Positions 8,510 through 59,950 of a DNA stretch of 64,000 bases are shown one piece after another (within the stretch, counting starts at the first letter, position 1; each line of letters begins with the position of its first letter). Source of the DNA: Guillardia theta CCMP2712 (taxonomy: Eukaryota; Protista; Cryptophyta); contig NW_005434651.1 in the NCBI RefSeq assembly GCF_000315625.1, positions 416,045 to 480,044 of the forward strand, read 5' to 3'. The notes under the pieces are model-generated. The model saw only the letters and a program-made list of their open reading frames with translations, was not told the origin of the DNA and did no database searches. The position numbers were made by a program, and so were the translations under genes.

Positions 8510-8860
8510 ACGTGCTCATGACTGCAGTGCCGCGTTTCCTCGAATCATTTCAGTCGTACTGTCAGTGTACGACGGTCCGGCGTAGTACCGATCACCGTAA
8601 CTGCCTCGCCGCCGTTGACTCGGAGGCTCCCGGAGCCTGAGTGGCGACTGCCAGCAGTGATCCCCGGGCTCCGACATGGCACCGTGCCGCCGACACACTG
8701 GCTTACTACTCAGTGTCGGACTGTCTCCGGAATCATGGCTCCGGGAGGCGGCCGACGGCCTGGCGACCGCGCGACCGTCCGGTGGCCGGCGCGGGCCCGG
8801 CCCCGCGGCCCGGCCGCGGATGACGGTCCGAATCACCGTGGCGTGACTGCTAGCTAGTAG
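8510..8860. repeat. GC-rich palindrome island A
   Basis: Dense CCGG/GGCC/GTAC words; hairpin AGGCTCC-C-GGAGCCT at 8624-8638; words shared with the other islands. Confidence 0.75.
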
Positions 8861-10022
8861 TTGTGTTCAGCTTCTTTGATGATCGATGAAATTTGAAAAG
8901 TACCCACATTTTTCAAAATATTCTTTAATAGTTGAAACCTAGGGCAAAGGATTCTTGAAATTTCTGGCCAAGTCAAGCACACAAGGACCAGGAGGAGGCC
9001 GTCACTGCTACCACCGGTACCTTCATCTGAGTTTCTTGGGGTCATCTTGGAGGTCCATCGAAGGGGTGGTTGATAGATCCACAGATGGTGGGGGTGTTCA
9101 TGGAAGGGTCACATGATTATTCCATACGTAAGTAAAGGGGTGCACTATCCTTGGGGTGGGTCCAGGTTGAGATTGTACAGGGTGGGGTACTCTAGTGGCA
9201 TTGACTTGACTGCCTGAGCATCGGAAGTGTCATTTTTGATATAGAAAAGATGGGATTTACTAGGGTAGGGTACTCCAGCTCATGTTGATGTGTACCCCTA
9301 GCCCCTCGTCTTGGGGTATAGGAATGCAGGGGGTAGTCTTACAGGGGTTATCTGAACAGTCTGATGGTAGTGAAGGTCTGGATGGGTTTTGATCATGGTA
9401 GGGGTGGTACTGTGTAGGGGTGATCATCTTTGGGTGGGGGTGGGGCGAACAAATAGGGGTGGTTGTGCAGGGGGGGGGCCGGTGGTGGATGCGGCGGGAC
9501 ATGGCACATGGCGGGAAGGAACGAATGGGAGGGGAGGGGAGGAAGAGGAAGGAGAGAGAGCAGGAGTGAAGTTCTAGGGTGTTGACATCTTCATACTTGT
9601 CAGCTCAAATGCCTCTCCTTGCTCGATGCCATCTCAAGGAGCATGCACTGGGCTACCTCGTATGTAACTTGTAGATTGCCTGAAGGGGTGTAAGGACTGA
9701 TGTGGGATGGGGTCGGTCATGCCGAGTGTGATGTGTCTCTGGATGCAATTAGAAGAGAAGTAAAGCCCGTTTTCACTTTGTCTGGCAAGTGAAGATCCCC
9801 GAGCAGGAATCAGTGAACCATTTGTTGATTTCACGTGAGCTTTCAAAGAACATACGCTCCTGAGATGGCAGCTAGTTGTGTGAGAGAGCACTTTATCCCT
9901 TATTTACAAAGGGCGGGAAGATATGTTTTGTGACCTATAATTTATCTGTGCCAGTTGTGTCATAATAGGCAAAAGTTTCTCACCATGTTGCTTGTAGGCC
10001 TTCCATCGAAGCTTCTGAACCA

Positions 10023-11914
10023 ATGATGCGCACTCTTCCTGTGCTTCTCTTGGTTGCGAATGCTGGATTTGCAGCTGCCTTTGCTCCTGCGTCCAGCATT
10101 CTCAGGGCGCCCAAGTCGTTGAGAACGCAGGGAGTCAACACTGTGCCTTCTAGACAAGCACCTTCGTTCCTCAAGGTGCGAGCAGCTGCCTCCATGCCCA
10201 TGGCTCCTGCTCTTGTGCCTGAAGGTGTGCCGTTGGAGAAGGTCAGTAACAGTGAGTTCTTCTGATCTCCTCATGGCTGATGTGCAAGACAGATCCCCGA
10301 ATGGCGTAAGAACTTGGACCTGAAAGCGTGGGCTGACGAGGTGATGGCTTGCTCATGATTCAGATTTTGAAATGACCAACATGCTGCAGGTCCGCGCGGT
10401 GGAGAAGGAATTCAGACAGAACCAGGGAGAGGAAGATGTGAAGCACATGAAGAAGATGCTCACCTGGTCGTACGTCCTGTACGCTATCGGCCTGGCTACC
10501 GCTGGGTTTGCTGTGCTTCCTTGGAACCCGATCTCTGCTCTCTGCTTGAGCACTGCTATCTGTGTTCGCTGGACCATGATTGGCCATCACGTTTGCCATG
10601 GTGGCTACAGCGCTCAGGTTTGACCATGATATGAGCCAGGATGACGAGGCTGAGTGTTTGTCTGTCAGGTTGGTGTCGACAGCCGATTCCATCGCTCCAA
10701 GTTTGCACGCGGCCCAATCAGGAGGTTCATCGATTGGTGCGACTGGATGCTTCCAGAGGTCTTGAATCGTCTCTTTCTGTGCGCTGGCTGTCGCTGAGAA
10801 CGAATCTTTGAAGGCGTGGGATGTGGAGCACAACTACATGCATCACTATGAGTTGGGAGAAGGGTCAGATCCTGATCTCTTGGAGAGGAATTCGCACAGC
10901 ATCCGTGTGTCGAATCAGCCAAAGTTCCTCAAGTATTTCCAGATGTTCGCTCTGATGGTCAGATTTCTGTGCTGCAATGGCTTTCTTACCTGCTGATGTT
11001 CTGGGTTTCAGGTCATGTGGAAGTGGTTCTATTACGCCCCCAACACTTTGAAGGAGATGTTTGCTCGCCAAAAGCTATTGGCAAGCAACAGGGGAGATAA
11101 CTCTGTCGTTCAGGTCGATTGAGAACATCCTGCTTTACTCTTGCCGTTGCTGAGATGCACGTGGACAGCCTTTCGAGCTCTCAAGGGCTCCTGGGGACTT
11201 CGGCGATGTGAGCAAGGCCGCCACGATCAAATATGTACATAGATGAATGACATTCTTGGTTTCCATCGATGACAATTTCTGTAGGTGTTTACTGAGATGT
11301 TCAAACTCAATTTTCTTCCTGCCAAAGTTGTCTTCTCCTGCTTGGCACCCTACTTCACTGCTCACTTCGTCATCACGCCCCTGATCTTCTATGCTCTGTA
11401 AGTTCTTTATTGAGATGGTTTGAAATTTGATTGACTCGCACCTCAGCTTTGGGCATGCTGTCGCCATGACTGCGTTTGCCAACCTTCTCCTTGCTGAAGT
11501 GCTCACCAACATTCACTCCTTCATCATTGTCGTTCCCAATCATGCTGGAGAAGATGTTTACAGATTCAAGACCCCCGTCAAGGTGCCTCTTCCCTGACAA
11601 TGTTAGGTGGGCTAACGGGCCGATAGGTCAAGAGCGATGAGTTCTATTTGAGAGCTGTCATCGGGTCTGTGAACTTCCGCACTGGGGGCAACGTCAACGA
11701 CTTCATGCATGGCTGGTTGAACTATCAGATTGAGCACCACATGTTTGCGGACATGTCCATGCTCTCGTACCAGCGAATGGCTCCCAAGATCAAGGAGATC
11801 TGTGACAGACATGGCGTCCCCTATGTCCAGGAGAATGTGTTCACGCGTCTGCGAAGAACCTTGCAGATTGGGGTTGGCTCTCGCTCGATGAAGGTGTGGG
11901 AGCGAGGAGATTAA
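10023..11914 (+). CDS. Plastid-targeted membrane fatty acid desaturase without a cytochrome b5 domain
   Basis: Three His boxes HHVCH, HNYMHH and QIEHH across exons; leader MMRTLPVLLLVANAGFAAA-FAP. Confidence 0.9.
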
Positions 11915-12147
11915 GAAGTGTATCGCGCCCTCACGAACATTTCTTACATTGTACTTTCATGTGGCTCATCGAGTCGAACTTTTGTTGTCAGATTTTGAGA
12001 TGTGGAAATCGGCAGCGTCCGCAAAACACTGAGATTCTTTAATAAATCTTTCCGCAGTCGGAAGGCTTCATCATTCCCATCCTAGAGACAAACAGTTGCA
12101 GCCTCCAGTGTTACGCTCGTGCCCGTGAGCTGAGCACAGAGCAGCTC

Positions 12148-13036
12148 TCATACTTTGAGCCTCAGCTTGTAGATAGATATGTTGGGACATCGATAGTGCT
12201 CATTGTGGTGTGCTAATGGGATGGTTTCACACTCGAAGTACTTTCCGATCTCCTCCAGGAACCACTCGTCCACATCTTTCCAGCGGTGCTCGTGTCCGAT
12301 GAAGACGAGGGTTTCGCGCTTGCAGGATGCCACAAGCGTCTCCACGAGCTGCTTCTGAAAGCTTACCGCATATGCCACCTCACACCCTATCACCACGTCG
12401 AAGGGGGCGCTTGACTGGAACCACTCGAAGCTCTGATGCTCTCCCCATGGCAGCTCTTCTGCCGTGCATGCGTGTTGAAGCCTGTTGATCTCTATGTTCT
12501 CTCTCAGAACCGGTACAACCTCTGCAAGCTCCGTGACGATCACGATGGCCCCCAGCATACCCAGGGTGAGGCCGCACATGCCCGTGCCAGCGCCCAACTC
12601 GAGCACCCTCTTCCCCTTCCAGAAGTCATCAGCAAAGTGCTGACGGTCTGCGAGATAGGCGGATAGCACCCTCGCACCATCCCAGACTGTGGCCTGTCAA
12701 CAATTGTTACAGGAGCAAGGCAGGGATACCATGGGAGTTCATCCACCTGATCTTCCCCGAAGTCGGAGCACTTTTGATGAATGGTAAGGGAGAGATCTGA
12801 AAGCATAAACATAAGCAAGGCAGCACAAGGTCACCAACTGCCCAATCCTTGAAGTGCACAGCAGCTGCATGATACATAAAGTGGAGTCGCAAGCCATTTG
12901 GAGCAAACACCAGAGAGATGGGAACACAGGGATCGAGACCTGGCCTTGGAGTTTCCCGTATCTCTTCCACGAATCTCTCTTGAAACCTCCTATGGTTTCG
13001 TCGCCATGCGAAGCTCTCCCCTCCAGCACTCATCAT
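12148..13036 (-). CDS. Methyltransferase-16 family (METTL21-like) protein lysine methyltransferase
   Basis: VWDGARVLSAYL, RVLELGAGTGMCGL, LPWG and FDVVIGCEVAY motifs. Confidence 0.88.
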
Positions 13037-13059
13037 GATCGCTCCCCTCCGATTCCGCC

Positions 13060-13180
13060 CCCCGCTCGCCCGGGCCAGGCTCGCCTCAGGGCCGAGAGAC
13101 TCGTCGGGCCCGGCCGGCCGCCAACAAGGGCTGAGTGACTCCCGGAGTCACCGTATGAAAAGCGAGGCGGGCCCAGGTGA
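13060..13180. repeat. GC-rich palindrome island B (short)
   Basis: CCCGGG, GGCCCGGCCGGCC and GTGACTCCCGGAGTCAC hairpin. Confidence 0.65.
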
Positions 13181-15410: not shown

Positions 15411-18308
15411 CTACTCTCCTTTTGTTTGTTCCTGCTGCTCATTCTCGTTCTCCTTACTCATTGTAACAGTGCAGTACTCCCTGCCCATTTCATGCTCATC
15501 CTCAAAGCATGTTAGTTCACGTGCTCTTGTCAGCTCTTCGGATTTCGCCGGAGAGGAGCGTCGCGCTGACGCCTGGGAGCCTGTCATGCATGCGGCGACT
15601 TCTCCTCTCCTCGTACCTGTCAAAAAATATGGTGGTATCCTCCTCTCCTGCGTAGCCGTCAGAGCAGCAGGCGGCCACAAGGCTGTAGGAAGGACCTGCC
15701 GCTTTCTTGGAGTCGGTGCCAGAGCTGCTGTTCCCCTGCTCCTGTCTCCCCGCCTTAGGCTCGTCCCAGTCCACCAGGTGAATGGATGGGATCTTTTCCT
15801 CCTGGTCACGACATCATCTCCGTCCTCGCTTCCTCCTCCTCCCTCCTCACTTGCAGCAGCTCCCCCAGGCCAACGGTAGCTTGCTCAAGGGCAGGATCCT
15901 CTTCGCCCCTTGCTTGACCTTCTCCTCCCCTTGGTTCACTTCCTTTCCTTGTGACTTATCCGCGTGCCCAAAGAGAAAGACGTCGATGTGCATGTCGGCA
16001 GAAAGAGCTTCTGCGAGTTTCGAGCTGGTAGACAAGAGAGACGTAAGCTTCAGTGTCTCCACCACTTCCTTGGCCTGGCACGACAAGCTCACTGGAAGTA
16101 GCTGTAGAGAGCAGAAACAGCGCAAGAGCACTGCACCAAGAAGGAAGCTTGGGAGAGGAAAGGAGAGGAGAGGAGGGGAGGGGAGGGAAGGTGTGTGGGG
16201 AAGGGAGTAAGGGAGGGAGACGTAATTAGACATCTAGACAGGAAACGAACAGAAACAAACAACACAGGACATTTTCTTGACCTGATTGACCCGCGCTCTG
16301 CTGTCAAGGAGCCAGACCTGGTCAAGCTGATGCTCACATTCTGCAAGACATTTGATTCGCTTCTCTTCTCACATGACCGACATCGGAGACGCAGCTCGTG
16401 CTCCCGAAGAAGCCGACATCATCTAACCATTGGAGGAGCCTCGCTTGCTGCGGTGTCAGTCAGCCTCGTCATTGCAAGGATGATCTCGTTCTCTCATCGC
16501 ACATCGCTAGATGACGGAGAGAAGCCAATGATGAAGACATTCGATGGTTTGTACTTGTCGACCAGAGCTTTGATCGCCTTTAGTGCTTTTGGGACCTGCA
16601 GAACACATCGACCATGAAGGTCACTATCCCCCTCGTTCCTCCCTCCTCCATAGCTGCATACGTACCAAACGCGCTTGTAATTTGCTTTCCTGCTCTTTCC
16701 TTACACCTTGTGCCACCTCATAAACAATTCCTTCCAGCTCTATCCCCAGTCTCTCCTTCTTCCACTTGTCGCTTTCGTGCAATCTGCCCGTCAGCATGCG
16801 AGGTAGCAAGAAACTTTACCTGCTGCTCTCGCTGATCAGTTTCTGTCTGTCAGGTAAAGTCCAATCGATCTTTCTGCACAGGAAGCGGCTCTCCTAAGGT
16901 AGCAAGTCATCATGAAGTATCGTCATGCTCGAGCGTTACCAACGAGCGCCAGCACTGAAGGCAGAGGGACCACAATGACAATAAGAGACGAACAAAAGCT
17001 GCTGCTACAATGGCAGCGAATGTGTACATCAAGTTGTCCACAGTTGCCATTTGTGAGAAGTGAAGGAGAACTTTCGACAGACTTGTCGACGCCTCTACCT
17101 GGCAACAGGCAAATCTTCACAGAAGAAGGTAAAAGGTGAGACATACATTTCTCTCTGCTTTCGCTTTTTCCTTGGCTTCCTCTGACTTCTCTCCGGCAGG
17201 GTCTTGGGTTTCCTCCTGAATTATCGCCTCCTCCACCTCTTCGTCTGGAGGAAAGACGTGCTGGCTTCCCGTAGGAATGAACGTGGCGATGATTTGTTGC
17301 GTCGGATTGTTTCCGCACCATTCAAAGTAGTCCTTTGCTCTTGCAAGGCACTTACCCTCCACTTCTCCAACCTGCATGGTGGAATACTTGCAGGATAGGG
17401 TGAGGTCTTGGCAGCAAGAGCTAGAGGAACGACTCACCGCTATGTTGGAATCGTCTCTCAGACCATTAAAATCCGGATGGCGCACACAGCCTGTTCATCG
17501 AACAAGCATCAGAGTTCCTTCACATCTGCATGACCCTTACCGTCTAGGAAGTTGATGAAACATTGTCCGTTGCCCTGCAATCCAATCCAAGATCATTCAG
17601 TCCGGTGACCAGGAATTCAAATTCCAAGACCAAGGGATAATAGACTTTTCTTATGAGAGGATTCTACTCCTTTCCCACCTGCTCCTGCTCCTGCACTTAC
17701 CCCTGCTCCTTCTCTTGCTCCTTCTCTCTCCTTCTTCTGCTCCTGCTGATTCTCCTGCTCCTTCTCCTACTCCTGCTCGTGGTCAAAGTTGAGTGGTTCT
17801 CTTGCTTATCCTCTCGTGATTGCAGACTCTGAATGTCTTTGCTCCTACCATCCATGTACGTGACAGTTGTCACATTTTACGCGTTCACACAGCCTTTTAC
17901 ACGTTCCCTGTAGCAGCATTCACACTATCCCTGAAACACAAGACGATGACCAACTGGTAAACTAACGGAGATCCTCGAAATGAACAAAGGGGCAGTATTG
18001 GTGTGAGATAATCCCATAAAGATGACTCTACATGTTGATGATTCAGCTGAATTCTGCCGATGGACTGTCATTTTTTGTCCTGCTTTCCTCACTGCCCGCC
18101 CTTCGTATCAACCAAATTGTTCTCAACAACTTTTTCCGCCTTATAGAGTATGTCCTTCTCCTTCATGCCTCAATCTCCTCTCCCTTCCCCTCCCCTTCCC
18201 CTCTCCCTCCATCGATGCACCCTCCTCTTCCTCCTTCACCTTCACAGCAACGATGAACATCGCTCCCAGCATCCACGTCGCCAACCATCCCCTGCTGATC
18301 CCCGACAT
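15411..18308 (-). CDS. Multi-exon protein: signal peptide, Cys-rich region, hydrophobic segment, degenerate HAD-like domain
   Basis: ATG 18308 MSGISRGWLATWMLGAMFIVAV; Cys module CFINFLDGCVRHP...CLARAKDYFEWCGN; later LGIELEGIV and VPKALKAIKALVDKYKPSNVFII. Confidence 0.5.
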
Positions 18309-18354
18309 CTTCCCCGACCGGCGAGGAACTGAAGCGGGCTTGCCGCAAGTGAAA

Positions 18355-18955
18355 CTTTTCTCACTCGGCCCGCCGGGCCGGGCCCCGGCCCCGGCGGCCC
18401 CGCCGGGAGGTCCTCAGGCACTGAGTCCGAGGCCCGGCGGCCTTGCCCGGGCCGGGCAGTCCGATCACTGTCACGGCAGCCGGGCCCTCGTCGTCGGAGG
18501 CTCGAGCCGGGCCGGGTCCGCTGAACGTTCGCGGTGTACGGTCACGGACTCGGTGGCCCTGAGTGACCCGGCGACCGTAGGCTGAGGCCCACTGAGTCGG
18601 TTTCAGTCACTTGTTGAACGTGACGGTCGGCCGGGGCCGCCCCCGGCGGGCCACCCGCCGTGCCGGCCGCCTGGCGCTGCCCGGGAGTCCAGCTCAGCCC
18701 GGCCCGGGCCCTCAGCAGGCCGCCGGCCCGGCCGCAGCCTCAGTGACCGGCCGGGCGGCCGGGCGGCCCTCTGAGTCACTGAGTCACCCGCTGAGGGCCC
18801 GATCCGACTGTGTACGACGGTCACAGTGAGGGACCGTACAGTAAAGCACCGTGGCGGCGCGGCGCGGCGCTGCGGCTTGAGGCGAGTCCGGCACTGCGGC
18901 AGTGCCGCGCCGCACCTGACCGCCGGACTGAGCCTAGTACGGTATTGCAAGCCTC
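18355..18955. repeat. GC-rich palindrome island C
   Basis: Hairpin CGGCACTGC-G-GCAGTGCCG at 18889-18907; TGAGTCA at 18772 and 18780; many CCGG/GGCC words. Confidence 0.8.
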
Positions 18956-19204
18956 AGAATCAGGTTCAGGCTTCTAGCAGCGGCTTTAATTAGAACACTA
19001 CTTATCACTACTCGAATACACACAAAAACTCGAAAGGCTGAAGCATGGCGAGGCTTCAACGCCACAAGTTACAAGTTTGCCCGAACCGTCTGTTAAATTA
19101 CGGTAGTACCGTACAAGCACTGGACCGTTGAACCACCAGCTCGAATGGCCCACTCTAGTTGCATGACTCATCAGAATGCTGACAAGCTCCTATTTTTGAA
19201 CTCC

Positions 19205-19795
19205 TCAACTCGACAGCACATGATCTAGCGCTTCGTCGAAAAGATCGTGCTGCTCTCTGCTGTGCGTTGGCGACCAGTATCCCGAGCTCTCCTTGCTGGG
19301 TGAGTAAGGCCTCGCCTCGCTTGTATTGACTAGGCTCTCGATCGGCAAGAGACAGACGGGCTTCCGCCTCGCCACGCCCTCCGTCTCTCCTTCCTCCTGC
19401 CCTGAGACCTCCTCAGGCTCCTCAGAGGTCGAGTCTTCCTCACTGCCTGCCCGCCTCCCCTGTGCCAAGGACGCCTGCCGCTCTGTGCTAGCGCCTTGCT
19501 TTCGGAGGTACGGCCATCGATGGATGCCTACGCGTCTGCAAGCGCTCTTGAACGCCGTCAGCGATAGCCCCTGGGCACCTCAAGGTCAGCGGACGACCCA
19601 TGTCAGTCACATCGGCAAGCTTACAAATGTCTTGGCGGCGTCGACTTGCTTCATGTCGACAAGCTTGGAGATAGACTCCAAGGTGAGGGCGACGCGATCG
19701 GATCCGCGCTGGGCTTCTCCATGTTTCTTGCGGGGGTAGACGTAGGTGCGATGCGGGAGGGAGGGAAGGGGATGACGGGGAGGGGAGGGGGTCAT
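19205..19795 (-). CDS. RWP-RK domain transcription factor, copy 1
   Basis: YPRKK...LTLESISKLVDMKQVDAAKTF, intron 19571-19624, then GLSLTAFKSACRRVGIHRWPYLRK. Confidence 0.85.
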
Positions 19796-20579
19796 GGCTG
19801 GGTGTGGATCCAGAAGGCGGAGGAAGCTTTGAGGGGCAGTGGGGGAGGGTTATCGAGGAAGTTCTATTGAGGCCTTGGAGGGTAGATTAGCGAGGATGAA
19901 AGAAGAAAGAGCCAGTGAGAAAGAGGTCAGCAAGGATACAGGATTGCTGAGGGATAGGAGAGGTGAACTAGGGATGGATGACCAGCTTCGCCAAGGGAAG
20001 TCGTGAAGATTGCAGGAAAGGCTCTCTAGGGATCAACACAATTCAGGGACGTGGTGTGGATGGACGGGAGGACGGGGTCTTAAGAAGAGGAGGAAGGGGC
20101 GGGGGTGTGAGGGGGTCACCAAGGGAGCTAAACAGTAATTGGATAGCCCTCCAAACTTGCTTACACCAAGGTAACGTGATGTCCTTGAAAACAACACCGT
20201 ATCGCGAAGGGTTGCTTTCTTCGCCCCTGGAGTCCAAAAACACTTTTAGTCCGCTATGTCCCTTTCTCACCGAGCACCCTCCATGAGGCTAGAAAGTGTC
20301 AGGTGGCAGGATAGGCATTTTCTCATTAATTGCACTTATAGAAAACAATCTATACAATGGTATCTTGAATCCTTCGTTGATTTCGCTGACTGGCTGGCTT
20401 GTGGCAGGTTCAGAAGCGCCCGGGCCGGCGATCGGATCAGCCGCAACGTGATACATTCCCGACGGGGTATACCGAGACCCTCCGATTGGCACGTCAACAC
20501 CTCTAAAAGTCGGCGCTCGTCAAAACATTTTAGTAAAAGACGGACGTCAGGTCACGGCACCAGTTGCCATTGAGTAAAC

Positions 20580-21005
20580 TTGGGCCACAGTCAGAGATCC
20601 GCCCGGCGCCCGCCAATCTGAATCGATCGGACGGCGACCGAACCCTCGGTCCGATCCGCCCGGCGGTCACCGTGGGTTGCTGTTGCCAAAGCCGCGCCGC
20701 ACTGCAATGCCTACAGTAACTTTGAGTAACTTAGTAAAGAGCGGTGGGCCGGCGGCCCCGTGTACGGTAGCCGGCGGTACTACGGTAGTAGGCTGCGCGG
20801 CCGCTCAGGCGGCTGGCCGCACAGGCCGCGCGCGCCGCGCCCGCGGCCGGCCCTCGACTTGCGCTCCGCCGGGGGGCTGCCAGACGGTGACGCAACTTGG
20901 ACTGTGTCTGCAGTGCCCGCAGTTGGCAGGATCAGTGGGTTTGGTTGTCGCTGTCTTTTGAGACGGTAAAGGAATCGGACGAATTCCGTACTGTAGTACG
21001 GTAAA
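20580..21005. repeat. GC-rich palindrome island D
   Basis: CGGTACTAC at 20775; hairpin CCGTACT-GT-AGTACGG at 20986-21001; CGCG/GGCC runs. Confidence 0.75.
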
Positions 21006-21046
21006 AAGCTTGATGGCTCATGGAAGAGAAAATTGATTTTGATTTT

Positions 21047-21634
21047 CTACAAGATATAAACAAAGCGAATGGACCAGTATCTCGACAGCACATGATCTAG
21101 CGCTTCGTCGAAAAGATCGTGCTGCTCTCTGCTGTGCGTTGGCGACCAGTATCCCGAGCTCTCCTTGCTGGGTGAGTAAGGCCTCGCCTCGCTTGTATTG
21201 ACTAGGCTCTCGATCGGCAAGAGACAGACGGGCTTCCGCCTCGCCACGCCCTCCGTCTCTCCTTCCTCCTGCCCTGAGACCTCCTCAGGCTCCTCAGAGG
21301 TCGAGTCTCCCTCACTGCCTGCCCGCCTCCCCTGTGCCAAGGACGCCTGCCGCTCTGTGCTAGCGCCTTGCTTTCGGAGGTACGGCCATCGATGGATGCC
21401 TACGCGTCTGCAAGCGCTCTTGAACGCCGTCAGCGATAGCCCCTGGGCACCTCAAGGTCAGCGGACGACCCATGTCAGTCACATCAGCAAGCTTACAAAT
21501 GTCTTGGCGGCGTCGACTTGCTTCATGTCGACAAGCTTGGAGATAGACTCCAAGGTGAGGGCGACGCGATCGGATCCGCGCTGGGCTTCTCCATGTTTCT
21601 TGCGGGGGTAGACGTAGGTGCGATGCGGGAGGGA
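21047..21634 (-). CDS. RWP-RK domain transcription factor, copy 2 (near-identical to copy 1; start codon not found, possibly a pseudogene)
   Basis: 21081-21634 matches 19209-19762 at an offset of 1872 bp; C-terminal tail and 5' flank differ. Confidence 0.75.
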
Positions 21635-29900: not shown

Positions 29901-30054
29901 TTTTCTTGGGACCGGTTGGACAACCCTCGGTACCCTACCCACCCTTGCAAAGTACAGATTAGACCCCACCCTTATGATTCCCCGTCTGATGTCAGTAAAA
30001 CTAACCCCTCCCTCACTCTTCGACGACCGTCGCACCCCCTTTTAAAATACTTTG

Positions 30055-43000: not shown

Positions 43001-43323
<323 letters not shown>

Positions 43324-43337
43324 GATGGAACGCATAC

Positions 43338-43437
43338 NNNNNNNNNNNNNNNNNNNNNNNNNNNNNNNNNNNNNNNNNNNNNNNNNNNNNNNNNNNNNNN
43401 NNNNNNNNNNNNNNNNNNNNNNNNNNNNNNNNNNNNN
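43338..43437. other. Assembly gap (100 N)
   Basis: Run of N. Confidence 1.
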
Positions 43438-45474: not shown

Positions 45475-45612
45475 AGACTCCCAAAGAAAACCACTGCTGA
45501 TGCTAACTGTATTGTGTATGCTGTATCACACAGCTCTGTCTTCTGGCGGTTTATCTGCGATTCATTTAACACATTCAGTCGTTCCTGATTCCACTGTTTT
45601 GTATCAGTATCT

Positions 45613-48032
45613 CTATCCCTTTACACCAACTGCCCGCTCGAGCTGTTCCCATTTCTGTTTCCTCGACAAATGCGCAGCTGCATTCCTGTCGACAGGTTAC
45701 TTTCATGCTGAAATCAGCAGATAACGTACTTCTCCATGTTCATCTTATGTTTTTGCGTGCATTCCTCCCACAACCTTGCATCCATGTCCATGAAAAGCTT
45801 TTGGACGTTGAAGGTCAGTCCATGAACAGTGCTGTGTAGATCAAAAAGTTAAATGAATGACACACATCAGTCAAATCATACCTATTCCAGTGCTTCGTTG
45901 TGTTTGCTTCGAGAGCAGGATACAACACGGGCAAAATTACGTCTCTGCTCTTAGCAATCAAGGAGACAATGTATTCGTTGTTCCATAGAAAAAGCGCTCT
46001 CTCAGCCACCTGTTTCAAATCAAAATCAACTTTTGATTCGCAATGCAGGAACAGAAACCAGACCTGGAAATGTGGGGAGTTGATACATCTTGCAATCAGA
46101 CGAAACAAGGGCTCAGCAACTTTGGCGAATTCAGCCGACTTGCACGAACATCAGAATGAAATGACAAGAAATCTTTCCAAATGGTCACCTGAGTCAGTTC
46201 TAACAACTCTTCCAGCTCATTCAAAAACATGACTTCTTTGGAACTGTTAGTATGCGGCCAGTACTTTATCAACCCTCTCAAAATCTGTCAAATCAGTAAG
46301 TTAAGTCAATAGAAGTACAAGTGGAAAGACTGACAATATCCGCGAGCTTTGGATCCTTCTCCAAATATTGAGTAATGCAATAGGATAGCTGCTGGTGGTA
46401 TTGCTGAATGCAGGAGCCTGATGGCTTGTGCAGAGGAATAAGTGCTCTTGATAGGAATTGCTTGTGCTCGTCTTTCAATGGCAATGCGAATCCGTTGATA
46501 ATGCTTCCAAGGATTTCCAGAAGCTCAGCAATGCCGTTGTGTCTCTCTGTTTCATAAATAAAGCGGTAAAAGACGTTGCTGATGGCCTATTTGACAATGC
46601 TTACAATGCTGTCAAGTTACCGAGAATAGATGCACCTTTCTGATGAAAGCACGATGAGGCATGAATTTTCCATAAATTCGGTGAAGAATGGTTTTCAAGT
46701 AGTCTCTCTCGCGTGGGTCTTCAGAGTCAAACAGCTCAAGAAATCTTGTGATCAGAGTTGTGTCGATGTACTTTCTGGCAACCTGTAGCACGATTCAAAA
46801 CATTTCCTAGAAAATTATGGATTCTTCGACCTTGGCCTCAGTTGAACCAGAGACAACGAAACGAAGAAAAAATTCGTAAACGATATGCAAGTGAGGCCAA
46901 GCCTAGAACATAGTAAATCGAAGAAATTTCAAGAAGAAGGAAAGATACAGGTTCAAGGATAGGTTCATCTTCCTCTGGATCGAACGGTGTGTCCTTTGGA
47001 CGAGCAGGCAACTGGCGAAAGATATTCGCAGAAACCTATCAATTTCCTGTTATCTTGACATCGGATTTCCATGAAAGGCAAGGACCATTGTCACAACTTC
47101 GGGCATGATTCCCTCGACGAAAGGTTGCTTTGCACTGTTCACGTAATCTACAAGCTCCAAAAGCGTCTTTCATGAAGACAGATAGATTTCAGCGACAGGA
47201 AATCATCAATCCGAAAAAAAAAACCTGTCGCTTGATTTCCTTGTCTCTATCCGTTCCTCCTCCATCAGTGAAATCGCAAATGATGCCACAAAGGCGCAAT
47301 TTTCGCACAAAAAGATTCGCACGCTCACTGTTTGGTACTTCTGTACACAGCAAATATCAGAGAAAAATTCTAAATCATGTATGAAAGCAAGACAATTCAT
47401 GACTAGGCATTCGCATTTTTTCGCTTGATTCAATCAGATCATGTAAAGAAAATTTATGATACATCAGATCATGCATTGATATGAATGAACAAATCAACCA
47501 TTCGCAGATGCTTCAATGCCAGTAGTTCAAATAAGAAAAGGGAAGACGATTAATTTCACAATGGACGTCATAGGACATGCTCAAAAATTGCCCTGTAATG
47601 ATCAACAACAAAGTCTGTACATCAGACATCCAGGACTGTGTCAGTGGATTATGCAGCTCAATACTCAGAAAACCTACTGTGAAGGGGTAAAGCACAGACT
47701 TTTGCAGGATTAATTTGAGGGTCAGAGAAGCAAGGAGATAGACACAGTATTGCGTAATATGACAATGAACTCAAGTGCATACTGATCATTTCAAAATCAA
47801 CCGATGTGACTGGGCAAATGTCAATCAACAAAGTATGGATGTGAGAAATAGGAAAACTGAAAGTGGTTTGGGCAATGCCAGAGTGCGAGAACTCAAATTC
47901 AGAAAGTATTGCTATGCAAGGAGTTTGCTCATGAGAAGCATACATATCTTAACAATCCATCAAAACGATCATTTCATCTGAACCTTTGAAGGATGGTAGA
48001 GTTTCCATAGCGTCCAGGCGGCTGCGCGCCAT
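45613..48032 (-). CDS. Protein phosphatase 2A regulatory subunit B' (B56)
   Basis: [66 protein letters not shown] and [16 protein letters not shown] motifs. Confidence 0.93.
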
Positions 48033-48954: not shown

Positions 48955-49385
48955 ATTCACTGAGAGTCATTCCGAGTCACTGCCCTGGCAGGGTGGCACC
49001 GCCGGGCCGGGCGCCGGGTCACCACCGGCCCGGCCGCCGGCCCGGCCCGGCCGCCGGCGGCCCGGGCCGGCCCGGTTTGAGTAACCGTAAGTTGGCCGCG
49101 GCCGGACGCACCGTCACCGTGACACTGAACAGTAGTACCGTACTATACTGCGGCGTGCCGCCGGCGGCACATCACCGTGCTGATGAGAGTCACGGGCAAT
49201 GATTCAGTGACCGCCCGGCGCCGGTCTGACCGCGCGGCTAGTACGTAGTCACTGATAGTAGTACCGCGGGCGGCGGCGGCGGAGCCTCGGAGCGCGCGGC
49301 CGCCCGGCCGGCCGGGGCCCGGCGGGCCGCGTGGCCGCGTGACACGGCACTGTGCCGCCAAAGTTTCCAGGGCTACCACCGGTAC
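48955..49385. repeat. GC-rich palindrome island G
   Basis: (CCGG/GGCC)n runs; GTAGTACCG at 49132 and 49258; GGCAC-T-GTGCC hairpin. Confidence 0.8.
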
Positions 49386-49941
49386 TTTCTAGGACGAAAC
49401 TGGGTAGATATAATATGTCAGGGTAGGGGGGTAAGTGGTACGTACTGGAGGAGGAAGCTTATTTTTGTGGGGAGGATTAGGGTAAAAGGTGGGTGGGGGT
49501 AGGGAAAGCAGGGCAAGGTAGACCTGGGGAGAAATCAAAAAGTCACGGACATCATGGGGTGGGTGGGGTGGTACATGGAGATGAGTTTTGAATGGGTGTG
49601 GTGGTGAAATTTATTAGACTGACCGAGGGTGGTCCTGGGGCAAGCAGGGGGTGGGGTAGTCGATAGATTACAGGAGGGGTACTCGAGTTTCTAAAATGCC
49701 TTGAGGTCGCAAAGGTCTTCAGTAACTAACATAGCCATTAATATTGTTATTAGGATAATTTTGTCTATTCGGAGTTCGCGCATACAGACTTGCTCACTAG
49801 CAAGAACTAAGAGGTCATAGGAAATAACGAGTATCTAGTATGGTTCTGCTATCTTAACCTATTTCTTGGTTATTAGTGAACGACCTGTTAGAGCTGTGAT
49901 CATGCAATCCTAGTAGGGGGAATGGAGGCAGGGTCGACGAG

Positions 49942-52900
49942 ATGGAGGGAGAAGGAGAGGAGCCGATAGGGGGGAGGAAGGCAGCGAAGGGTACCAAGAA
50001 TGGAGGACGTGGTTTCCCATCACTCCTGCTTGAAGGACGTGACTTCAATACGAAGCATATATGCCTCTCAACTACGATTATGGGCTGCAAGACAAGTTTT
50101 TGGAAGCTTGCCTTTTTTTGGCAAGGCACATGGGAATGAAATTTACCTATGGAGCATTATGTCCTGTACTGCAGTCGTGAAAAGTATTTGCGTATAGGAA
50201 CCAGCGGGTACTGAGACATTTTTCGGCGCTGTACTGCTCTTTGAGACTTTGCGCAAGTGAAATTTTTGGAAATGCAGAATTCCATGCAAGGATTTTTCGA
50301 TCTGTCTTCATGATTGTGATATACAAACAAAATTTATGTGACGCGTAATCAAGAAAGAAATCGTCATTCGTATTTAGACGAGGTAGAGCAGTGAAGGTTC
50401 ATTTGAGACCGATCAGTTACGGTGTTGCATATGCGGCTTTGAACATGAATTTGAAATAGCTGTGCATGTAGAGATGATGGCGTGTGCAATTAGACACACT
50501 GAAGTAGACCAGGAATTGCCGAATGCTGTCTTTGTTGTTCATGTTCAATTCCAAACTGATTAGATGCTCTTTCAGAAAAATGATGGAGAAGTACACCTCT
50601 GAATTGTTTGAAGCAAGCCCATATAGTAGGACACTATGCCGGATCTAAAGTTACTACCCTTGGCCAGATCTGATATCGTGCCGTTAAATCAATCTTGATG
50701 AGATGCCTCTGATCTAACTCATCCTTCGGTCGATTTGGAGAAGTATCTATTTCCAATTTGATTCAAAGTTTGTATCATATTCTATTGAGGCCTCAACTAT
50801 GCATTTGATTCCTGCATTCCCCACAAATTCCGAGGATACCCTCAATGATATTCTCAAAGGATTTGTCGTCATGTCATTTATCCTTTCAGGTCGCTCTCTT
50901 CTTTTATACGATTGGTTGGATTGCTGAATAGAATTTCAGGAGCCGGTTGTTTATGGCGTCGGAGAAGGAGAAGACAGTCCAACCACTCTGAGCGCCACGA
51001 GAGGAGAGACGACAACAGCTTACGACGAGCAATTGCCATCGCCATCGAGGTAAGCCTTGAGATGCTAAGTGGGCGCTGCCGCCCAGCATTGAATGAATGA
51101 ACATAGCAACGAAACCGAGAGGTGCATGCTGGAAACAGAAATGTTGTTCAGAGTCCCTACAGGGTGCCAAGAGCTGCCCCAGTAATATTTTGTTTCATAT
51201 TAATTCACTCCTCAAATGATGATTTTTTGATAGGTGGATGGAAAATTAGATGATGTTGTGATAGACATGGCAGAAATTTCATTTGATGACATTGAACTCA
51301 TGAAGGTAAAAAAACCTATCTTTTAATCATGCGTTTTACTTTCCTTTTAATGAGCATACTTGTAATCAGGAATCAAAGGAGTCTGCCTTTCATCTGAAAA
51401 ACAAGTGGTTGGAACAACAATTAAGGCTAAAACACAAGTACTTCATCAATGTTCATGCTGGTGACACGTTCTTAGCAATGTTTTGTCAGGCTGGATGCAA
51501 AGTCGGTGAAGTTGGAAGTGGACAGGAACGATCTATTTTATGATTCATTCCGATCGTTTGCCAAGTTTTCTGGTGAACAACTTCAAGGGCCGTTACAGGT
51601 TGAACAGATGCCTGCTCTTCCCAAAGACAGTCTCCTTAAGTGTGGGTATCTAGATTAAGTTCAAGAGAGAAGATGGAAGGGACGACGGAGGGTTAACCAG
51701 GCATTGGTTTATGTTGATAAGTAGAGAGGTATTGTTGTTTTCCTTGGACCATGCACTCTGAATGCACTGGTAGGTGGTCAACCCGGCGTATGCATTGTTC
51801 ACACCTGTGGGGAAAAACAGAACCTTTCAGGTTCTTTTGGACACAATTTGTTTTGTGCTGAGGGTTTCTGACTTCTCCCTAGGTGAACTCTGCTTCAAAG
51901 CATCAATCGCATCATCTCGACTACTTTCGCTTTATTGGGAGGGTGTGGGGGAAAGCCATCTTTGACGGTATTTGCTGGACTGCAAAGCAGAAGAACTTGT
52001 TCACTGCATAGTGCAGGATTTCTTGTGGAGTCAAATTTCGCTTCAACCATTTACAAAGTGATGCGAAGACCCTCACATCGTCGAATTGTTTTCCCTGACT
52101 TGATTCAACAGTACCTTTTGGAGCGTGATATAGGATTTGATGACATGTCCCGTGTTGATCCCGTGTATCATAGCTCATTACAGTGGTTTCTCGGTCAGAA
52201 TTCTCCATCTATTCCGCATGTGAGATTTGCACTTATCTTTCCGCAGACAACGATATCGAAGCTGCAGACCTGGACCTATACTTCGTTATTGAAGAAGAAG
52301 AATTCGGATCGATAGTTCAGGTTCCGCTCAAAGAGGTACCCGGTTGCTTATACATTGCCGTTTGCTTAGAACACACACAGAATGGCGAATCCATCCGGGT
52401 CACAAACGACAACAAGCACGAGTACCTGGAGGTTTCTGTTCCATTTCCCATACCCTCTTGTTTGATTACCAGCCTCTAGCTCCTTTGTGACCGGAGACTA
52501 GTCAAGAGCGTGCAGCCACAACTAGACTCGCTAAAAGCAGGTGCCTTTGAACCTCCTCGAAGGTCATCCACTAATTCAAGGGCCACCACAGGATTCTATG
52601 ACATTATGCCCCAAGATGTGCTTCTCAAGTTTACGGAAGATGAGCTCGAGGTTTTGATGCTTTTGATGCTTGTTTGTATCCCTTGATCTGATTGATGTGT
52701 AGCTGCTTCTGTGTGGAATGCCTACGATCGACATAGCCGACTGGAAGGAGAATTGCGAATACAAGGTAAACGATTGGAGTCGCCATGTCGTGTCTGAAGG
52801 GAAGTTGCAGGCGGGCTACACAGCAGATCATGAAGTGATGCTATGGTTTTGGGAGCTCGTGGAGAGTTGGGATGAGGTGCTTGTCTACTTGTGTTGGTCA

Positions 52901-57854: not shown

Positions 57855-59197
57855 ATGAGCTTTGCCGATCATCATGCAGCATATAAAGTTTCTTTCTGCA
57901 ACGTGCTCATGTCTGCAGTCTTCTTGATACAGGTCTTTCCGGCAAATTGTTTTGTTCCCGTATTGCACTTCTCACCCTCAAAGCAAACTACCCAAACATG
58001 TACTGTAGCCTCATCTAGTTTCGCTCGTGTGAAAGTCAAAAGTGATCGATTGATGAACAAACTGAAAATGAGTCTTCCTAATCAACAGTCTGGAGTAAGC
58101 GCCGGGAGTGATATCGCTGCTAAGTTTGATGCTATCAACTCAAATCGTCGGGACATCTCAATAAACATCGGTACCTTGCTTCTAGGTGTATGAACATTGT
58201 AACTTGAATGTTAGGACTTGTTGACAAGGCAGGAGACAGTCCCTCCAGCAGGATGCCCTGGGAAAAGAAAGTTCTGTTCATCAGACATGGTGTGACGGAG
58301 ATGAACGAGTACCTCCGGTCGGTGCCTTACGGAAGCAAGGACTTTGTGGATCCGGGGATGAGGGACACGAGATTGACGGTGACGGGGCAGGAGCAAGCAG
58401 CAGAACTGGGCAAGGCGATGATAGAGCAAGTGGAGACATGGAAGGAGAACGGAGAAGGTTTGGATCTTATTGTCAGCTCCCCACTCTCCCGTGCGCTGGA
58501 CACGGCTCAACTCATCTTCTCGGGCGAGAACTTGAAGTGCATCCCGCGTCGAGTGAATCCACTCGTGAGGGAGAGGATGTGGCTGTCTTCCGATGTTGGC
58601 ACTCCGACGTCTCAGCTGCGGTCCGCGTATCCTTCCTGGGAGTTTGGGGACATGGAGGACGTCTGGTGGTACACGACTGAGGATGACTGGCAGACGAAGG
58701 AGTGGCGGAGGTTTGAGACATCCTGGTCATTTGCTGTCATTGTGTGACCTTGCAATGCAGTCCTGGTCGATACGTCTGTGCTGGAGAACCAGAATCGGTG
58801 TTCCGGTGAAAGTCCGTCGTCGACCCACGGACTGAGTTGGTGATACGTGCGTTATCCAGGAAACGACTGACGGAGTTCAAGAACTGGCTGAAGGTGAAGC
58901 CCACCGATGATGTTGGAATGGTTCCCTCGGATTGCTTACGAGATACTAACAGACGCGAGAAGAGCAGAGGATCGTCGTGGTTGCTCACTGGGGTGTCATC
59001 TATGCGTTGACAGGTTGCCGTGTTGGTTGTGAACTGAGTCCTCATGCTGACTTTCACACCACCAGGTTTAAGTCTGAGGAATTGCCAGGCTCAGGTTGAC
59101 CATTGTTTGATGAGAAACGATATCGATCTCACTGGATATGTTTCAGGAGATCAAGCTTTCCACCCTCTTAGAGCAAGATATTTTTTCGACGGATTAA
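57855..59197 (+). CDS. Histidine phosphatase / phosphoglycerate mutase-like protein, probably plastid-targeted
   Basis: FIRHG, DTRLT..G..QA, IVSSPLSRALDTA and VVVAHWGVI motifs; leader ...VFPANC-FVP. Confidence 0.85.
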
Positions 59198-59264
59198 ATG
59201 ATTACGTGATGATTGTAAATGATTGCAGCATGAGGGCACACATACTGCGACCGCAGTAAGAGCT

Positions 59265-59950
59265 TTAGGCTCAGTCACGTCACGCCTGAGACTCCAACCT
59301 ACCAATCCGGCCTATGATCACTGATTGAATGCGGAGTCCGACGGGGGCCCGGCCGTTGGATGGTCCCGGAGTCCGGCCATCGGAGCCTGAGGCACGGGAC
59401 TGAGTCAGCGCAGACCGGACCGTACGGTACTGGCCGCCGCTGTCAGTGGGCCACTGAGACAGCTGCTTTGAAAACGCCGGGCTTGAAGCTCGGACCGTGC
59501 CGCCGATGACTCTCATCACTGTGTCAACTTGCGGCACCGTGCCGTCGCTGCCGCACGATCCGGTCCCGGGATGGCACTGCCAGCGGCGAGGGGCCGCCCC
59601 GAGCAAAGCTCCTTTTGCTCGGAGGACGTCACTGACTCGGACTGTTGGAGTCACACTGTGCTGTCACAGTGACGCGGCACCGAGAGACAGGCCCTGAGGT
59701 AAGCTAACACGGCCCGGACTCCGGGAGCACATCAGTGTCTGGCCCGGGCAGCGCCTGAGACTCGGACCGGCGGACCGGCGGTGACGGTACCACGCCGTGA
59801 CGCCGCCGGTGACGCATACCGTACAGTGTGTCACAGTGACCACTCGGAACCCGGACTCCTGAGAACTCGCCGGGACCAACACCGTGAGTGCACTTGAAAT
59901 CCGACATTGTGAAATGTGCGGCAGATGGGGGGATGAGGGGCCCCGAGTCA
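59265..59950. repeat. GC-rich palindrome island H
   Basis: GGCACCGTGCCG at 59533; GTCACAGTGA at 59663 and 59830; CGGAGCCTGAG at 59381; TGAGTCA at 59401. Confidence 0.8.

Follow-up and report, generated by a model that had tools for sequence, protein, structure and literature searches.

Eight GC-rich intergenic islands in a 64-kb window of the Guillardia theta nuclear genome are mosaics of short odd-length palindromes, most of them beside a gene start

The 64-kb stretch of Guillardia theta DNA analyzed here (the window) contains eight GC-rich intergenic islands, A to H, each 0.12-0.7 kb long and spaced 2-14 kb apart (Table 1). Their GC content is 0.58-0.75, compared with 0.51 window-wide. The orientation of the gene beside island A is set by the desaturase C-terminus (11627-11911, plus strand). 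Beside island B, the Methyltransf_16 Pfam match lies in the minus frame 12151-12696 (E 9.5e-27); the RWP-RK domain beside island C is in the minus frame 19208-19579, and downstream of island F, a PALP N-terminus is found in the plus frame 36713-36994. The two RWP-RK paralogues match at 99.6% in a block (19209-19762 versus 21081-21634), and an independent 2011 DNA contig spans 20278-21110, covering island D, with 0 differences. An assembly gap (43338-43437) starts 19 bp past a (CT)n microsatellite (43001-43318). Islands G and F are 5.5 and 7.5 kb away from it, respectively, and it has no bearing on any island.

Table 1. Islands and associated features in the window. An odd palindrome consists of an arm, a single central base, and the reverse-complement arm.
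Feature	Coordinates	Strand	Odd palindromes, observed vs expected	Description
Island A	8510-8860		5 vs 0.58 (arms of at least 5; shuffles)	Spacer from the stop codon of a plus-strand gene (8501-8503) to the 5' side of a plus-strand fatty-acid desaturase gene; GC 0.67, CpG observed/expected 1.17; right flank G-skewed
Island B	13060-13180			Short; immediately upstream of a minus-strand Methyltransf_16 gene
First exon, minus-strand gene left of island C	18239-18315	-		X7 contig record 17, positions 1-77
AGTTTCACT	18348-18356	-		Oriented and richer in AT; lies at the edge of island C nearest the gene; candidate core-promoter element
Island C	18355-18955		11 vs 1.45	Untranscribed spacer from a minus-strand gene 5' end (18315) to the 3' end of a minus-strand RWP-RK gene; GC 0.75; local fold z = -3.1
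19-nt odd palindrome CGGCACTGC-G-GCAGTGCCG	18889-18907			In island C; longest perfect one in the window's islands
Island D	20580-21005			Spacer from the 5' side of RWP-RK paralogue 1 to the 3' end of RWP-RK paralogue 2, both minus strand
Island E	30055-30190		2 vs 0.16	Short; AGTTTTACT element on either side (29994-30002, minus; 30170-30178, plus), both pointing outward
Island F	35305-35850		5 vs 0.68	Upstream of a plus-strand PLP-dependent enzyme gene; GC 0.58, the minimum of the set
Island G	48955-49385		13 vs 1.14	Most CCGG/GGCC odd palindromes; then a strongly G-skewed GGGT zone, plus strand; fold z = -3.3
Island H	59265-59950			Spacer from a plus-strand histidine-phosphatase gene to a plus-strand LamG/ephrin-receptor-like gene (Pfam)

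The RNA evidence is sparse, at 165 placed reads. Reads of the RWP-RK gene end near 18967, at the edge of island C (depth 21 in bin 18967-19163), and RNA depth is about zero throughout the island. On the other side, 40 bp away, an X7 transcript contig starts at 18315; its GT..AG introns lie on the minus strand, the first exon being followed by an intron of 665 nt and then by introns of 46-51 nt. This is the sole transcript 5' end mapped in the window, and since trans-splicing is common in this species, affecting about one fifth of genes (PMC5619915), transcript ends are to be read with care. RNA reads restart at about 20940-21330, just past island D. Words sampled from island H were all present in two independent 2011 DNA runs and occurred in none of 13 RNA-type assemblies (6 studies; three assemblies of only about 1 Mb); GC-rich hairpin DNA is under-represented in Illumina libraries. 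The islands are untranscribed spacer, reaching from the poly(A) end of one gene to the next start or lying between two starts.

The sequence-only reading had placed every island on the 5' side of at least one gene. Pfam-oriented genes put a 5' end beside A, B, D, F, and H, and RNA does so for C, so the claim stands for six islands; for E and G it is not contradicted, the link to a gene start coming from an edge motif or flank skew only. The flank on the transcribed side is usually a G-skewed tract, as at the right of island G (GC skew +0.64; 28 GGGK versus 0 MCCC). A vocabulary scan found no island in either of the convergent spacers, at 11.95-12.15 kb and 61.35-61.6 kb (n = 2). At least one divergent promoter region, an AT-rich one at 26.6-27.4 kb, is likewise free of islands, which shows that islands are not required for transcription.

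The words reported as common to the islands were all found exactly where expected: GTAGTACCG at 8582, 19103, 49132, and 49258 and in reverse at 20775, GTGTACGACGGTC at 8565 and 18810, GGCACCGTGCCG at 8678 and 59533, GTCACAGTGA at 18820, 59663, and 59830, and CGGAGCCTGAG at 8631 and 59381, none of them occurring elsewhere in the window. Against dinucleotide-preserving shuffles of each island, 141 10-mers were common to at least two islands (24.9 ± 6.3 in shuffles) and 18 to at least three (0.18), and 40 12-mers were in common (2.0). The excess persisted without GC-only words (10-mers with at least four A/T, 27 versus 2.8 ± 2.2; shuffle maximum, 13), and size-matched genic controls showed word sharing of just 1.4-2x, with no 10-mer in three or more segments. 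A fixed vocabulary had been proposed together with its own refutation, namely, words no more frequent than in such shuffles; sharing lies far above that level, so the proposal is not refuted. In a leave-one-out test, the 6-mer vocabulary set all islands apart from the other 200-bp stretches of the window, without exception and also where these were GC-rich; island B, for instance, scored 1.23, versus a control maximum of 0.04. No remaining stretch came near island level, and the list of eight is complete for the window. We conclude that the islands form a discrete class of sequence that recurs and is built from a shared vocabulary.

The islands are not copies of one another. In all-versus-all blastn, the only matches were low-complexity ones of 60-75%, scattered over many offsets and over both orientations, which excludes collinearity, and the longest exact word in common between islands is 13 nt. 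With neither collinear copies nor consistent terminal repeats nor target-site duplications, a MITE or another DNA transposon was rejected, as the sequence-only reading had anticipated for ordinary transposons. Its statement that terminal repeats are absent holds for consistent ones; the sole candidate is a weak inverted pair of 20 nt at the ends of island F (35303-35322/35834-35853, 75% complementary). SINEs and Helitrons were also rejected, as the islands contain no tRNA-like sequence, Rfam family, or collinear copies. Tandem Repeats Finder (TRF) arrays were confined to 48997-49075, part of island G, with none in the other seven islands, which is not a satellite. An Rfam scan at the gathering threshold gave 0 matches and thus no structured-RNA gene. 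The earlier finding of no credible ORFs was borne out: island ORFs have flat GC at the three codon positions, without codon periodicity, and ten of them gave 0 Pfam matches.

Odd palindromes with arms of at least 5 nt numbered 49 in the islands, compared with 6.1 ± 2.3 in dinucleotide shuffles and with 13.7 ± 3.8 and 26.2 ± 5.9 under order-3 and order-4 Markov models, respectively. Even palindromes (15 versus 11-18 under Markov models) were at expectation, although they were nonetheless 2.6-fold above dinucleotide shuffles. Gap-3 palindromes were likewise enriched, while gap-0 and gap-2 palindromes were not, and in the rest of the window there was no excess of odd palindromes (ratio to shuffles, 0.8). 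The word "palindrome" in the first description was therefore apt and can be sharpened, since it is specifically the odd-length palindromes that define the islands. This grammar is a new result beyond the first observation.

Odd palindromes with arms of at least 4 nt cover 27% of island bases, and in island G 40% of the bases lie inside odd palindromes. The units are 9-19 nt long, have 4-nt arms of more than 20 kinds, and vary in order and orientation from island to island. Recurrent words include GKCAC-N-GTGMC, GTAC-S-GTAC, CCGGA-S-TCCGG, and GGCC-S-GGCC. GKCACNGTGMC has 7 matches versus 0.19 expected, six of them within islands A, G, and H (in H, GTCAC-A-GTGAC twice and GGCAC-C-GTGCC once); 16 of the 20 window matches of CACNGTG are inside islands, and GTACSGTAC has 3 matches versus 0.04 expected. 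Island B carries a 17-nt odd palindrome, GTGACTCC-C-GGAGTCAC, at 13135. Identical half-sites reappear across islands with differing central bases, and the palindromic words do not favor either strand with respect to gene direction. Compared with shuffles, the fold energy z was negative in 7 of 8 islands (Stouffer z of about -4.7). By contrast, structure is avoided in GC-rich genic DNA, where z ranges from +1.5 to +6.5.

The CpG observed/expected ratio is 1.05 in the pooled islands, 0.70 outside, and 0.64 in GC-matched genic DNA; the TpA ratio is 0.89 in islands versus 0.53 outside. Outside the islands, the depletion of CpG could reflect a methylated genome or other causes, such as codon usage. 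The islands fall within the CpG island definition of Gardiner-Garden and Frommer (length of at least 200 bp, GC above 50%, and CpG observed/expected above 0.6), six of the eight being 351-686 bp long but B (121 bp) and E (136 bp) shorter. Association with transcription starts was found for A, B, C, D, F, and H, with one transcript 5' end mapped. This dinucleotide signature together with the position makes CpG-island promoters the nearest known kind, rather than leaving the islands in a class without precedent. The sequence-only reading was right in seeing a discrete, recurrent, non-transposon class. As in vertebrates, discrete GC-rich blocks (here 0.1-0.7 kb) with a CpG ratio of about 1 stand in a CpG-depleted genome at gene 5' ends, are non-collinear, share short motif words, have a G-skewed transcribed flank, and are missing from some promoters. 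Unlike vertebrate CpG islands, they belong to a cryptophyte alga, are relieved of TpA depletion too, and appear to take up the entire spacer, as far as the poly(A) end of the upstream gene. To our knowledge, saturation with odd-length palindromes is not a described property of CpG islands, and in the literature we found no description of promoter regions designed as odd-palindrome mosaics.

The reading that we favor, and to which we give about an even chance, is that the islands are CpG-island-like promoter/insulator spacers bearing orientation-independent sites for dimeric proteins. They would act like CpG-island promoters, as GC-rich spacers beside gene starts that are not depleted in CpG or TpA, composed as mosaics of short odd-length palindromes drawn from a genome-wide vocabulary. 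The dyad-symmetric words would be landing sites for dimeric DNA-binding proteins in either orientation, and the putative bound proteins would keep the spacer accessible, mark out the promoter, and shield it from read-through by the upstream gene. Recurrent half-sites with a variable central base are how sites of dimeric proteins behave, which supports a binding-site role, as does the absence of strand bias in the words. In yeast, Reb1, Abf1, and Rap1 sites in nucleosome-depleted regions serve as promoter openers, insulators, and roadblock terminators. The proposed function resembles these in orientation independence, in the terminator-to-promoter spacer, and in the compact genome; however, the yeast regions are AT-rich with few defined sites, whereas the islands are GC-rich and consist almost wholly of dyad words to which proteins may bind. 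Among the roles offered at the outset, "regulatory hub or boundary" fits the positions best.

The main rival is a mutational process that generates palindromes, which we regard as possible but on the unlikely side. Open, unconstrained spacers would be driven up in GC, by GC-biased gene conversion at promoter recombination hotspots or by the absence of transcription-coupled C-to-T decay, and a templated process (quasi-palindrome correction, strand-switch synthesis, or hairpin intermediates of cut-and-paste transposon excision) would keep writing and perfecting short palindromes, so that the vocabulary would reflect which hairpins are stable rather than protein binding. Excision of the hAT type forms a flank hairpin with one unpaired tip base, which would yield the odd center. 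The preference for a 1-nt center over an even one is general across many unrelated arms, of more than 20 kinds, and this points to a generating process that is independent of sequence and not to a host of unrelated proteins with the same geometry; the gap-3 enrichment, absent at gap 0 and gap 2, fits triloop-type hairpins. The favorable folding, set against the avoidance of structure in GC-rich genic DNA, the nearly unconstrained dinucleotide signature, and the lack of word orientation relative to genes point the same way, as does the fact that the islands next to the two RWP-RK paralogues have nothing in common despite the 99.6% identical block in these genes. However, purely local duplication would not predict identical 11- to 13-mers with a variable center in separate islands, no 8-bp direct repeats flanked the palindromes examined by eye, and arms of 7-9 nt are long for excision footprints. 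GC peaks at recombination hotspots in promoters of dogs, birds, and yeast likewise show a sharp GC rise in promoter-proximal open DNA, but GC-biased conversion predicts GC enrichment and not a shared palindromic vocabulary, and alone it does not account for the missing islands in two convergent spacers and in one AT-rich promoter spacer.

It is improbable that the islands are clusters of tiny mobile palindromic units homing to intergenic DNA, whether heavily decayed MITEs or a eukaryotic counterpart of bacterial REP/BIME mosaics or of fungal mitochondrial GC clusters. They share with bacterial REP/BIME (PMC2817692, PMC3733652) a strictly extragenic location and a build from clustered short GC-rich palindromes, which occur in both orientations, follow a site-dependent mosaic order, and include units common between sites, a likeness in architecture only; the weak inverted repeat of island F would also suit mobility. 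True REP/BIME was rejected, as REPs are stem-loops of 20-40 nt with a conserved GTAG/CGTC tetranucleotide head and an associated tyrosine transposase (RAYT), whereas the islands lie in a eukaryotic nucleus, their units are shorter (9-19 nt), far more diverse, perfect with a single central base, and without such a head or any conserved longer unit, and there is no sign of mobility. No transposase gene is linked to any island within the window, and the 13-nt limit on exact words and the lack of collinear blocks and consistent ends speak against mobile units in general. GC clusters of fungal and green-algal organelles (PMC3162594, PMC4524435) are also short GC-rich palindromic repeats in intergenic DNA, but they form recognizable repeat families in organelle genomes, whereas the islands are nuclear and at gene 5' ends. 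Least probable, in our estimate, is a primary role as replication origins, DNA-modification targets, or three-dimensional chromatin boundaries rather than as promoters. Spacing of 2-14 kb and dyad-rich, structure-prone DNA are compatible with such roles, but promoter function explains more simply why the islands fit gene 5' ends so tightly and are missing from convergent spacers. CpG-island promoters in other eukaryotes are often also origins, and the two kinds of role are not mutually exclusive.

If the islands are promoter spacers with protein-binding sites, as we favor, an AT-richer oriented element, AGTTT(N)AC, at their gene-proximal edge may serve as the core promoter. At island C, AGTTTCACT precedes the 5' end of the mapped transcript by about 33-41 nt. 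Its relatives are at 20565-20581 (minus strand) and at both elements flanking island E. Relative to gene direction, strand bias was 11:1 for TTACT and 8:0 for TTTAC (uncorrected p of about 0.007).

Each of the five words that the sequence-only reading had quoted as common to different islands was found exactly at its given positions and nowhere else in the window. Word sharing was counted across the eight islands (GC 0.58-0.75) with both strands pooled, and a dinucleotide-preserving shuffle of each island served as the null. As that reading had proposed, sharing lay far above the shuffles: at k=10, 141 words occurred in at least two islands (24.9±6.3 in shuffles) and 18 in at least three (0.18 in shuffles), and at k=12, 40 words occurred in at least two (2.0 in shuffles). 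The islands also had in common 27 10-mers with at least four A/T (2.8±2.2; maximum of 13 in 200 shuffles), showing that the sharing is not merely CCGG/GGCC low complexity. Size-matched genic segments, GC-rich or not, shared 10-mers at only 1.4-2x the level of their own shuffles, and no 10-mer was common to three of these control segments. Chance and low complexity were ruled out, since the sharing survived removal of GC-only words and was absent from genic controls.

Each island in turn was left out and scored with a 6-mer log-odds vocabulary trained on the other seven. The left-out island scored 0.71-1.85 per base, whereas the best non-island 200-bp window, with 32 windows of GC at least 0.60 included, reached 0.09; this gap remained after GC-only 6-mers were dropped. 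We conclude that the islands are a discrete class and that the list of eight is complete for the window. Furthermore, independent 2011 runs covered 20278-21110 and 18706-19238 with zero differences and contained all sampled island H words, so the islands are real DNA and not an assembly artefact. The original observation was thus confirmed and sharpened, within one 64-kb window.

Features of the window (window coordinates; strand of the gene or element)
Feature	Position	Strand	Description
Island A	8510-8860	+	Upstream of fatty-acid desaturase gene (Pfam)
Island B	13060-13180	-	Upstream of Methyltransf_16 gene (Pfam)
Island C	18355-18955		
Island D	20580-21005		
Island E	30055-30190		
Island F	35305-35850	+	Upstream of PLP-dependent enzyme gene (Pfam)
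Island G	48955-49385		
Island H	59265-59950	+	Upstream of LamG/ephrin-receptor-like gene (Pfam)
G-skewed tract	9000-9300	sense	GGGT/GGGG-rich, just downstream of island on transcribed side
G-skewed tract	18000-18350	sense (minus)	As above
G-skewed tract	36000-36500	sense	As above
G-skewed tract	49390-50000	sense	As above
AGTTT(N)AC(T)	18348-18356	-	AT-richer
AGTTT(N)AC(T)	20565-20581	-	AT-richer
AGTTT(N)AC(T)	29994-30002	-	AT-richer
AGTTT(N)AC(T)	30170-30178	+	AT-richer
Simple array	6177-6356		16-bp G-rich repeat, 11.5 copies
Simple array	40920-41115		TCA/TCT trinucleotide runs; extreme codon-position GC in all frames
Simple array	43734-43835		13-bp AGGAGCAGGCAGG repeat, 7.9 copies

Inverted repeats with a stem of at least 6 and a loop of at most 8 numbered 71 in the islands (15.3±4.6 in shuffles), at a density of 21.5 per kb within islands and 2.3 per kb elsewhere. 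When palindromes were sorted by arm spacing, the excess was concentrated in odd-length palindromes, typically an arm, one central base and the reverse-complement arm. Counts were compared with dinucleotide shuffles and with strand-symmetric order-3 and order-4 Markov models trained on the islands themselves; even palindromes showed no excess under the island-trained models.

Palindromes in the islands with arms of at least 5, by gap between the arms
Gap	Observed	Shuffles	Order-3	Order-4
0 (even)	15	5.8	11.2	18.0
1 (odd)	49	6.1±2.3	13.7±3.8 (max 23)	26.2±5.9 (max 43)
2 (even)	18	6.0	9.2	13.0
3 (odd)	26	5.9	9.6	15.0

With arms of at least 6, 20 palindromes of gap 1 were observed versus 1.8. Where the arms held at least two A/T, there were 12 of gap 1 (versus 1.9; maximum of 6 in 300 shuffles) and 9 of gap 3 (versus 1.6), with no excess over expectation at gaps 0 and 2. 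The central base was C or G in 94 of 107 cases, versus about two thirds in shuffles. Taken singly, seven of the eight islands showed a significant odd-palindrome excess, the exception being island B (121 bp). Odd palindromes reached 14.9 per kb in islands versus 0.86 per kb outside, where they were slightly rarer than in shuffles (0.8x), and those with arms of at least 4 made up 27% of island bases. Local folding was modestly better than in shuffles in 7/8 islands (z -0.9 to -3.3), and GC-rich genic controls avoided structure (z +1.5 to +6.5).

Several of the words quoted in the sequence-only reading make up all or part of an odd palindrome, namely GGCAC-C-GTGCC, GTCAC-A-GTGAC and CGGTA-G-TACCG around GTAGTACCG. 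In different islands, some half-sites reappear with differing central bases. GKCACNGTGMC had 7 matches in the window (0.19 expected), 6 of them inside islands A, G and H; CACNGTG fell inside islands in 16 of 20 cases, the islands being 5% of the window, and GTACSGTAC had 3 matches (0.04 expected). A strong odd excess, with even palindromes no more frequent than the k-mer composition of the islands predicts, is an unusual statistical signature and points either to a binding geometry common to the sites or to a particular mechanism of DNA repair or replication. Full-text literature searches yielded no account of islands like these in the nuclei of cryptophytes or other algae, although the 2012 genome paper or its supplement may contain a remark; as far as found, the odd-palindrome grammar is apparently undescribed.

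The window is eukaryotic nuclear DNA of 51% GC. Gene orientation was taken from Pfam matches and RNA, because a codon-usage strand map was too noisy, and raw RNA reads and transcript contigs were compared over 16.8-22.7 kb (165 reads). In this thin sample island C had zero RNA coverage. On its left lies a minus-strand gene whose transcript contig starts 40 bp away, at 18315, the sole mapped 5' end; over 16.8-18.3 kb this contig shows minus-strand GT..AG introns that measure 46-51 nt except for one of 665 nt. On the right of the island, RNA reads of the neighbouring gene end 12 bp away, at about 18967, and that gene is also on the minus strand, with an RWP-RK domain on the minus frame at 19208-19579. 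Island C therefore spans the interval that separates the 3' end of one gene from the start of the next. Island D is placed likewise between two tandem RWP-RK paralogues, and the words of island H were found in 0/13 RNA-type assemblies (6 studies; three assemblies of only about 1 Mb). No island lies in the two definable convergent spacers (11.95-12.15 kb and 61.35-61.6 kb), nor at 26.6-27.4 kb, where the spacer is divergent and AT-rich and adjoins a GT37-like gene. The islands are thus 5'-linked, yet not present at every promoter. The claim that they are intergenic and on the 5' side of a gene held for A, B, C, D, F and H by Pfam or RNA.

Composition also set the islands apart. CpG observed/expected was 1.05 in islands, against 0.70 elsewhere and 0.64 in genic DNA of matched GC, and TpA was 0.89 in islands versus 0.53 outside. 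The transcribed flank showed sense-strand G skew at A, B, C, F, G and H, with a GC skew of +0.64 to the right of island G; for the gene on the left of island C, the G-rich tract forms the start of its 665-nt first intron. GC-rich island words had no strand bias relative to gene direction. Directional promoter words were rejected: with seven islands oriented to the downstream gene, asymmetry ranked 56/64 at k=5, not above other assignments. The only strand-asymmetric exception was the AT-rich TTACT/TTTAC words. The element AGTTT(N)AC(T) lies at the gene-proximal edge of C and D and on both sides of E, directed at the gene, and in island C the copy precedes the mapped 5' end by about 33-41 nt. 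It is a weak candidate for a core-promoter element at about -35, judged from a small sample and a pattern picked post hoc.

All-versus-all blastn between islands gave only alignments of 60-75% identity, in both orientations and at many offsets, which is typical of short common words and not of collinear copies. A consistent terminal inverted repeat was not found in the islands, the lone candidate being two 20-nt stretches, 75% complementary, one at either end of island F. The asserted non-collinearity and the lack of terminal repeats and target-site duplications were thus upheld, with that one weak pair as a qualification, and decayed transposable element copies were ruled out on these three grounds. 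Paired palindromes with flanking 8-bp direct repeats, as in a hAT footprint, were sought by eye and none was seen; the overlapping palindrome pair at 18889-18908 is a tandem 8-nt unit. TRF detected a tandem array in island G and none in the remaining islands, Rfam and ARAGORN found nothing across the window, and island ORFs had equal GC at all three codon positions and zero Pfam matches, in agreement with the earlier statement that they are not credible. Tandem repeat, ncRNA, tRNA-derived and coding identities were ruled out by these analyses.

CpG-island promoters fit the islands better than any other known kind, given their positions, size, CpG signature, G-skewed flank, non-collinear shared motifs and the existence of island-free promoters. 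The odd-palindrome grammar of these cryptophyte islands is unlike CpG-island promoters. Our verdict is that the islands are CpG-island-like promoter spacers with odd-palindrome grammar as a new element. The sequence-only interpretation was partly supported: it was right in seeing a class with a shared vocabulary that is not an ordinary transposon, but the match to CpG-island promoters places the class close to a known kind.

Half-sites that recur around a freely varying centre, without a set orientation, resemble sites for dimeric proteins. In the compact yeast genome, opening and insulating factors work in the spacer between the poly(A) site and the next start, and the islands occupy the same kind of spacer. 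Dimer-like half-sites and this position lead us to prefer a model in which the islands may act as binding platforms and insulators, which we give an even chance. Its main rival, a mutational process that writes palindromes into open, unconstrained, GC-drifting DNA, would account for the diverse arms, the common preference for 1-nt and 3-nt centres and the better-than-random folding, but not for identical 11-13-mers that reappear in different islands; we consider it rather improbable. Mobile mini-units resemble the islands in their REP/BIME-like architecture but fail on unit length, conservation and ends. Possible replication-origin, modification or boundary roles would not exclude these readings. 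Bolder still, and unlikely in our judgement, is the idea that the grammar is more than incidental. In one version, a dedicated process would write arm-N-arm' palindromes into the open intergenic DNA of cryptophytes, as a nuclear eukaryotic counterpart of bacterial REP/BIME mosaics or iterated hairpin-repair footprints; in the other, a lineage-specific dimeric protein family would read a 5-N-5 code by which promoters and gene boundaries are set throughout the genome. Either, if true, would be an undescribed way to build and mark eukaryotic intergenic DNA.

To our knowledge, cryptophyte promoter architecture is essentially unknown and cryptophytes are still without routine genetic tools. A class that marks gene starts and is seen from sequence alone could improve gene-boundary annotation in Guillardia and relatives. 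The same class would offer promoter and insulator candidates for building transformation vectors, and motifs such as GKCAC-N-GTGMC and GTAC-S-GTAC would be concrete starting points in the search for the proteins that read them.

Relatives were seen outside the islands, and none of the searches recovered a relative's island. The SET/LSMT-like ORF at 44380-45471 has its best named homologue in the cryptophyte Hanusia phi (67% identity); together with the 46-51 nt introns and the 51% GC, this makes the source a cryptophyte, very probably Guillardia theta. Metagenome scans queried with window proteins found no relative, ten island ORFs were absent from the protein collection searched, and length-filtered protein searches beside island H gave no match. 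An environmental contig (L001; ENA ERZ930064, PRJEB17505) is 97.0% identical to 43808-45632 over an 1826-bp alignment with 48 mismatches and 4 gaps that spans no island; a close strain or species is therefore present in public environmental data. The freshwater metagenome run X6 contains a strain that is nearly identical and another whose divergence reaches about 6%; among the matches listed, contigs taken as the divergent strain's did not turn up over the islands, which has no bearing on island conservation.

Blocks of 39-47% GC (23000-28000, 30500-35000, 45500-48000 and 50000-52500) alternate with blocks of 50-58% GC, and the island-free divergent spacer at 26.6-27.4 kb sits in an AT-richer one. 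A (CT)n microsatellite (43001-43318; 318 bp) is followed by 19 bp and then by a 100-N assembly gap (43338-43437), which is probably due to this repeat; the gap, with island G 5.5 kb away and island F 7.5 kb away, has no bearing on the island finding. Inside the 665-nt intron, a (CCTGCT)n-like repeat at 17588-17784 had a depth of hundreds to about 1,500 in all four runs, versus about 5-10 nearby, indicating multi-copy or low-complexity sequence in genome and metagenome. A 554-bp block (19209-19762 and 21081-21634) recurs at 99.6% identity and with sharp ends in both of the tandem minus-strand RWP-RK genes, and its surroundings, islands C and D included, are unrelated between copies; from the sequence, it looks like a recent gene conversion or partial duplication.
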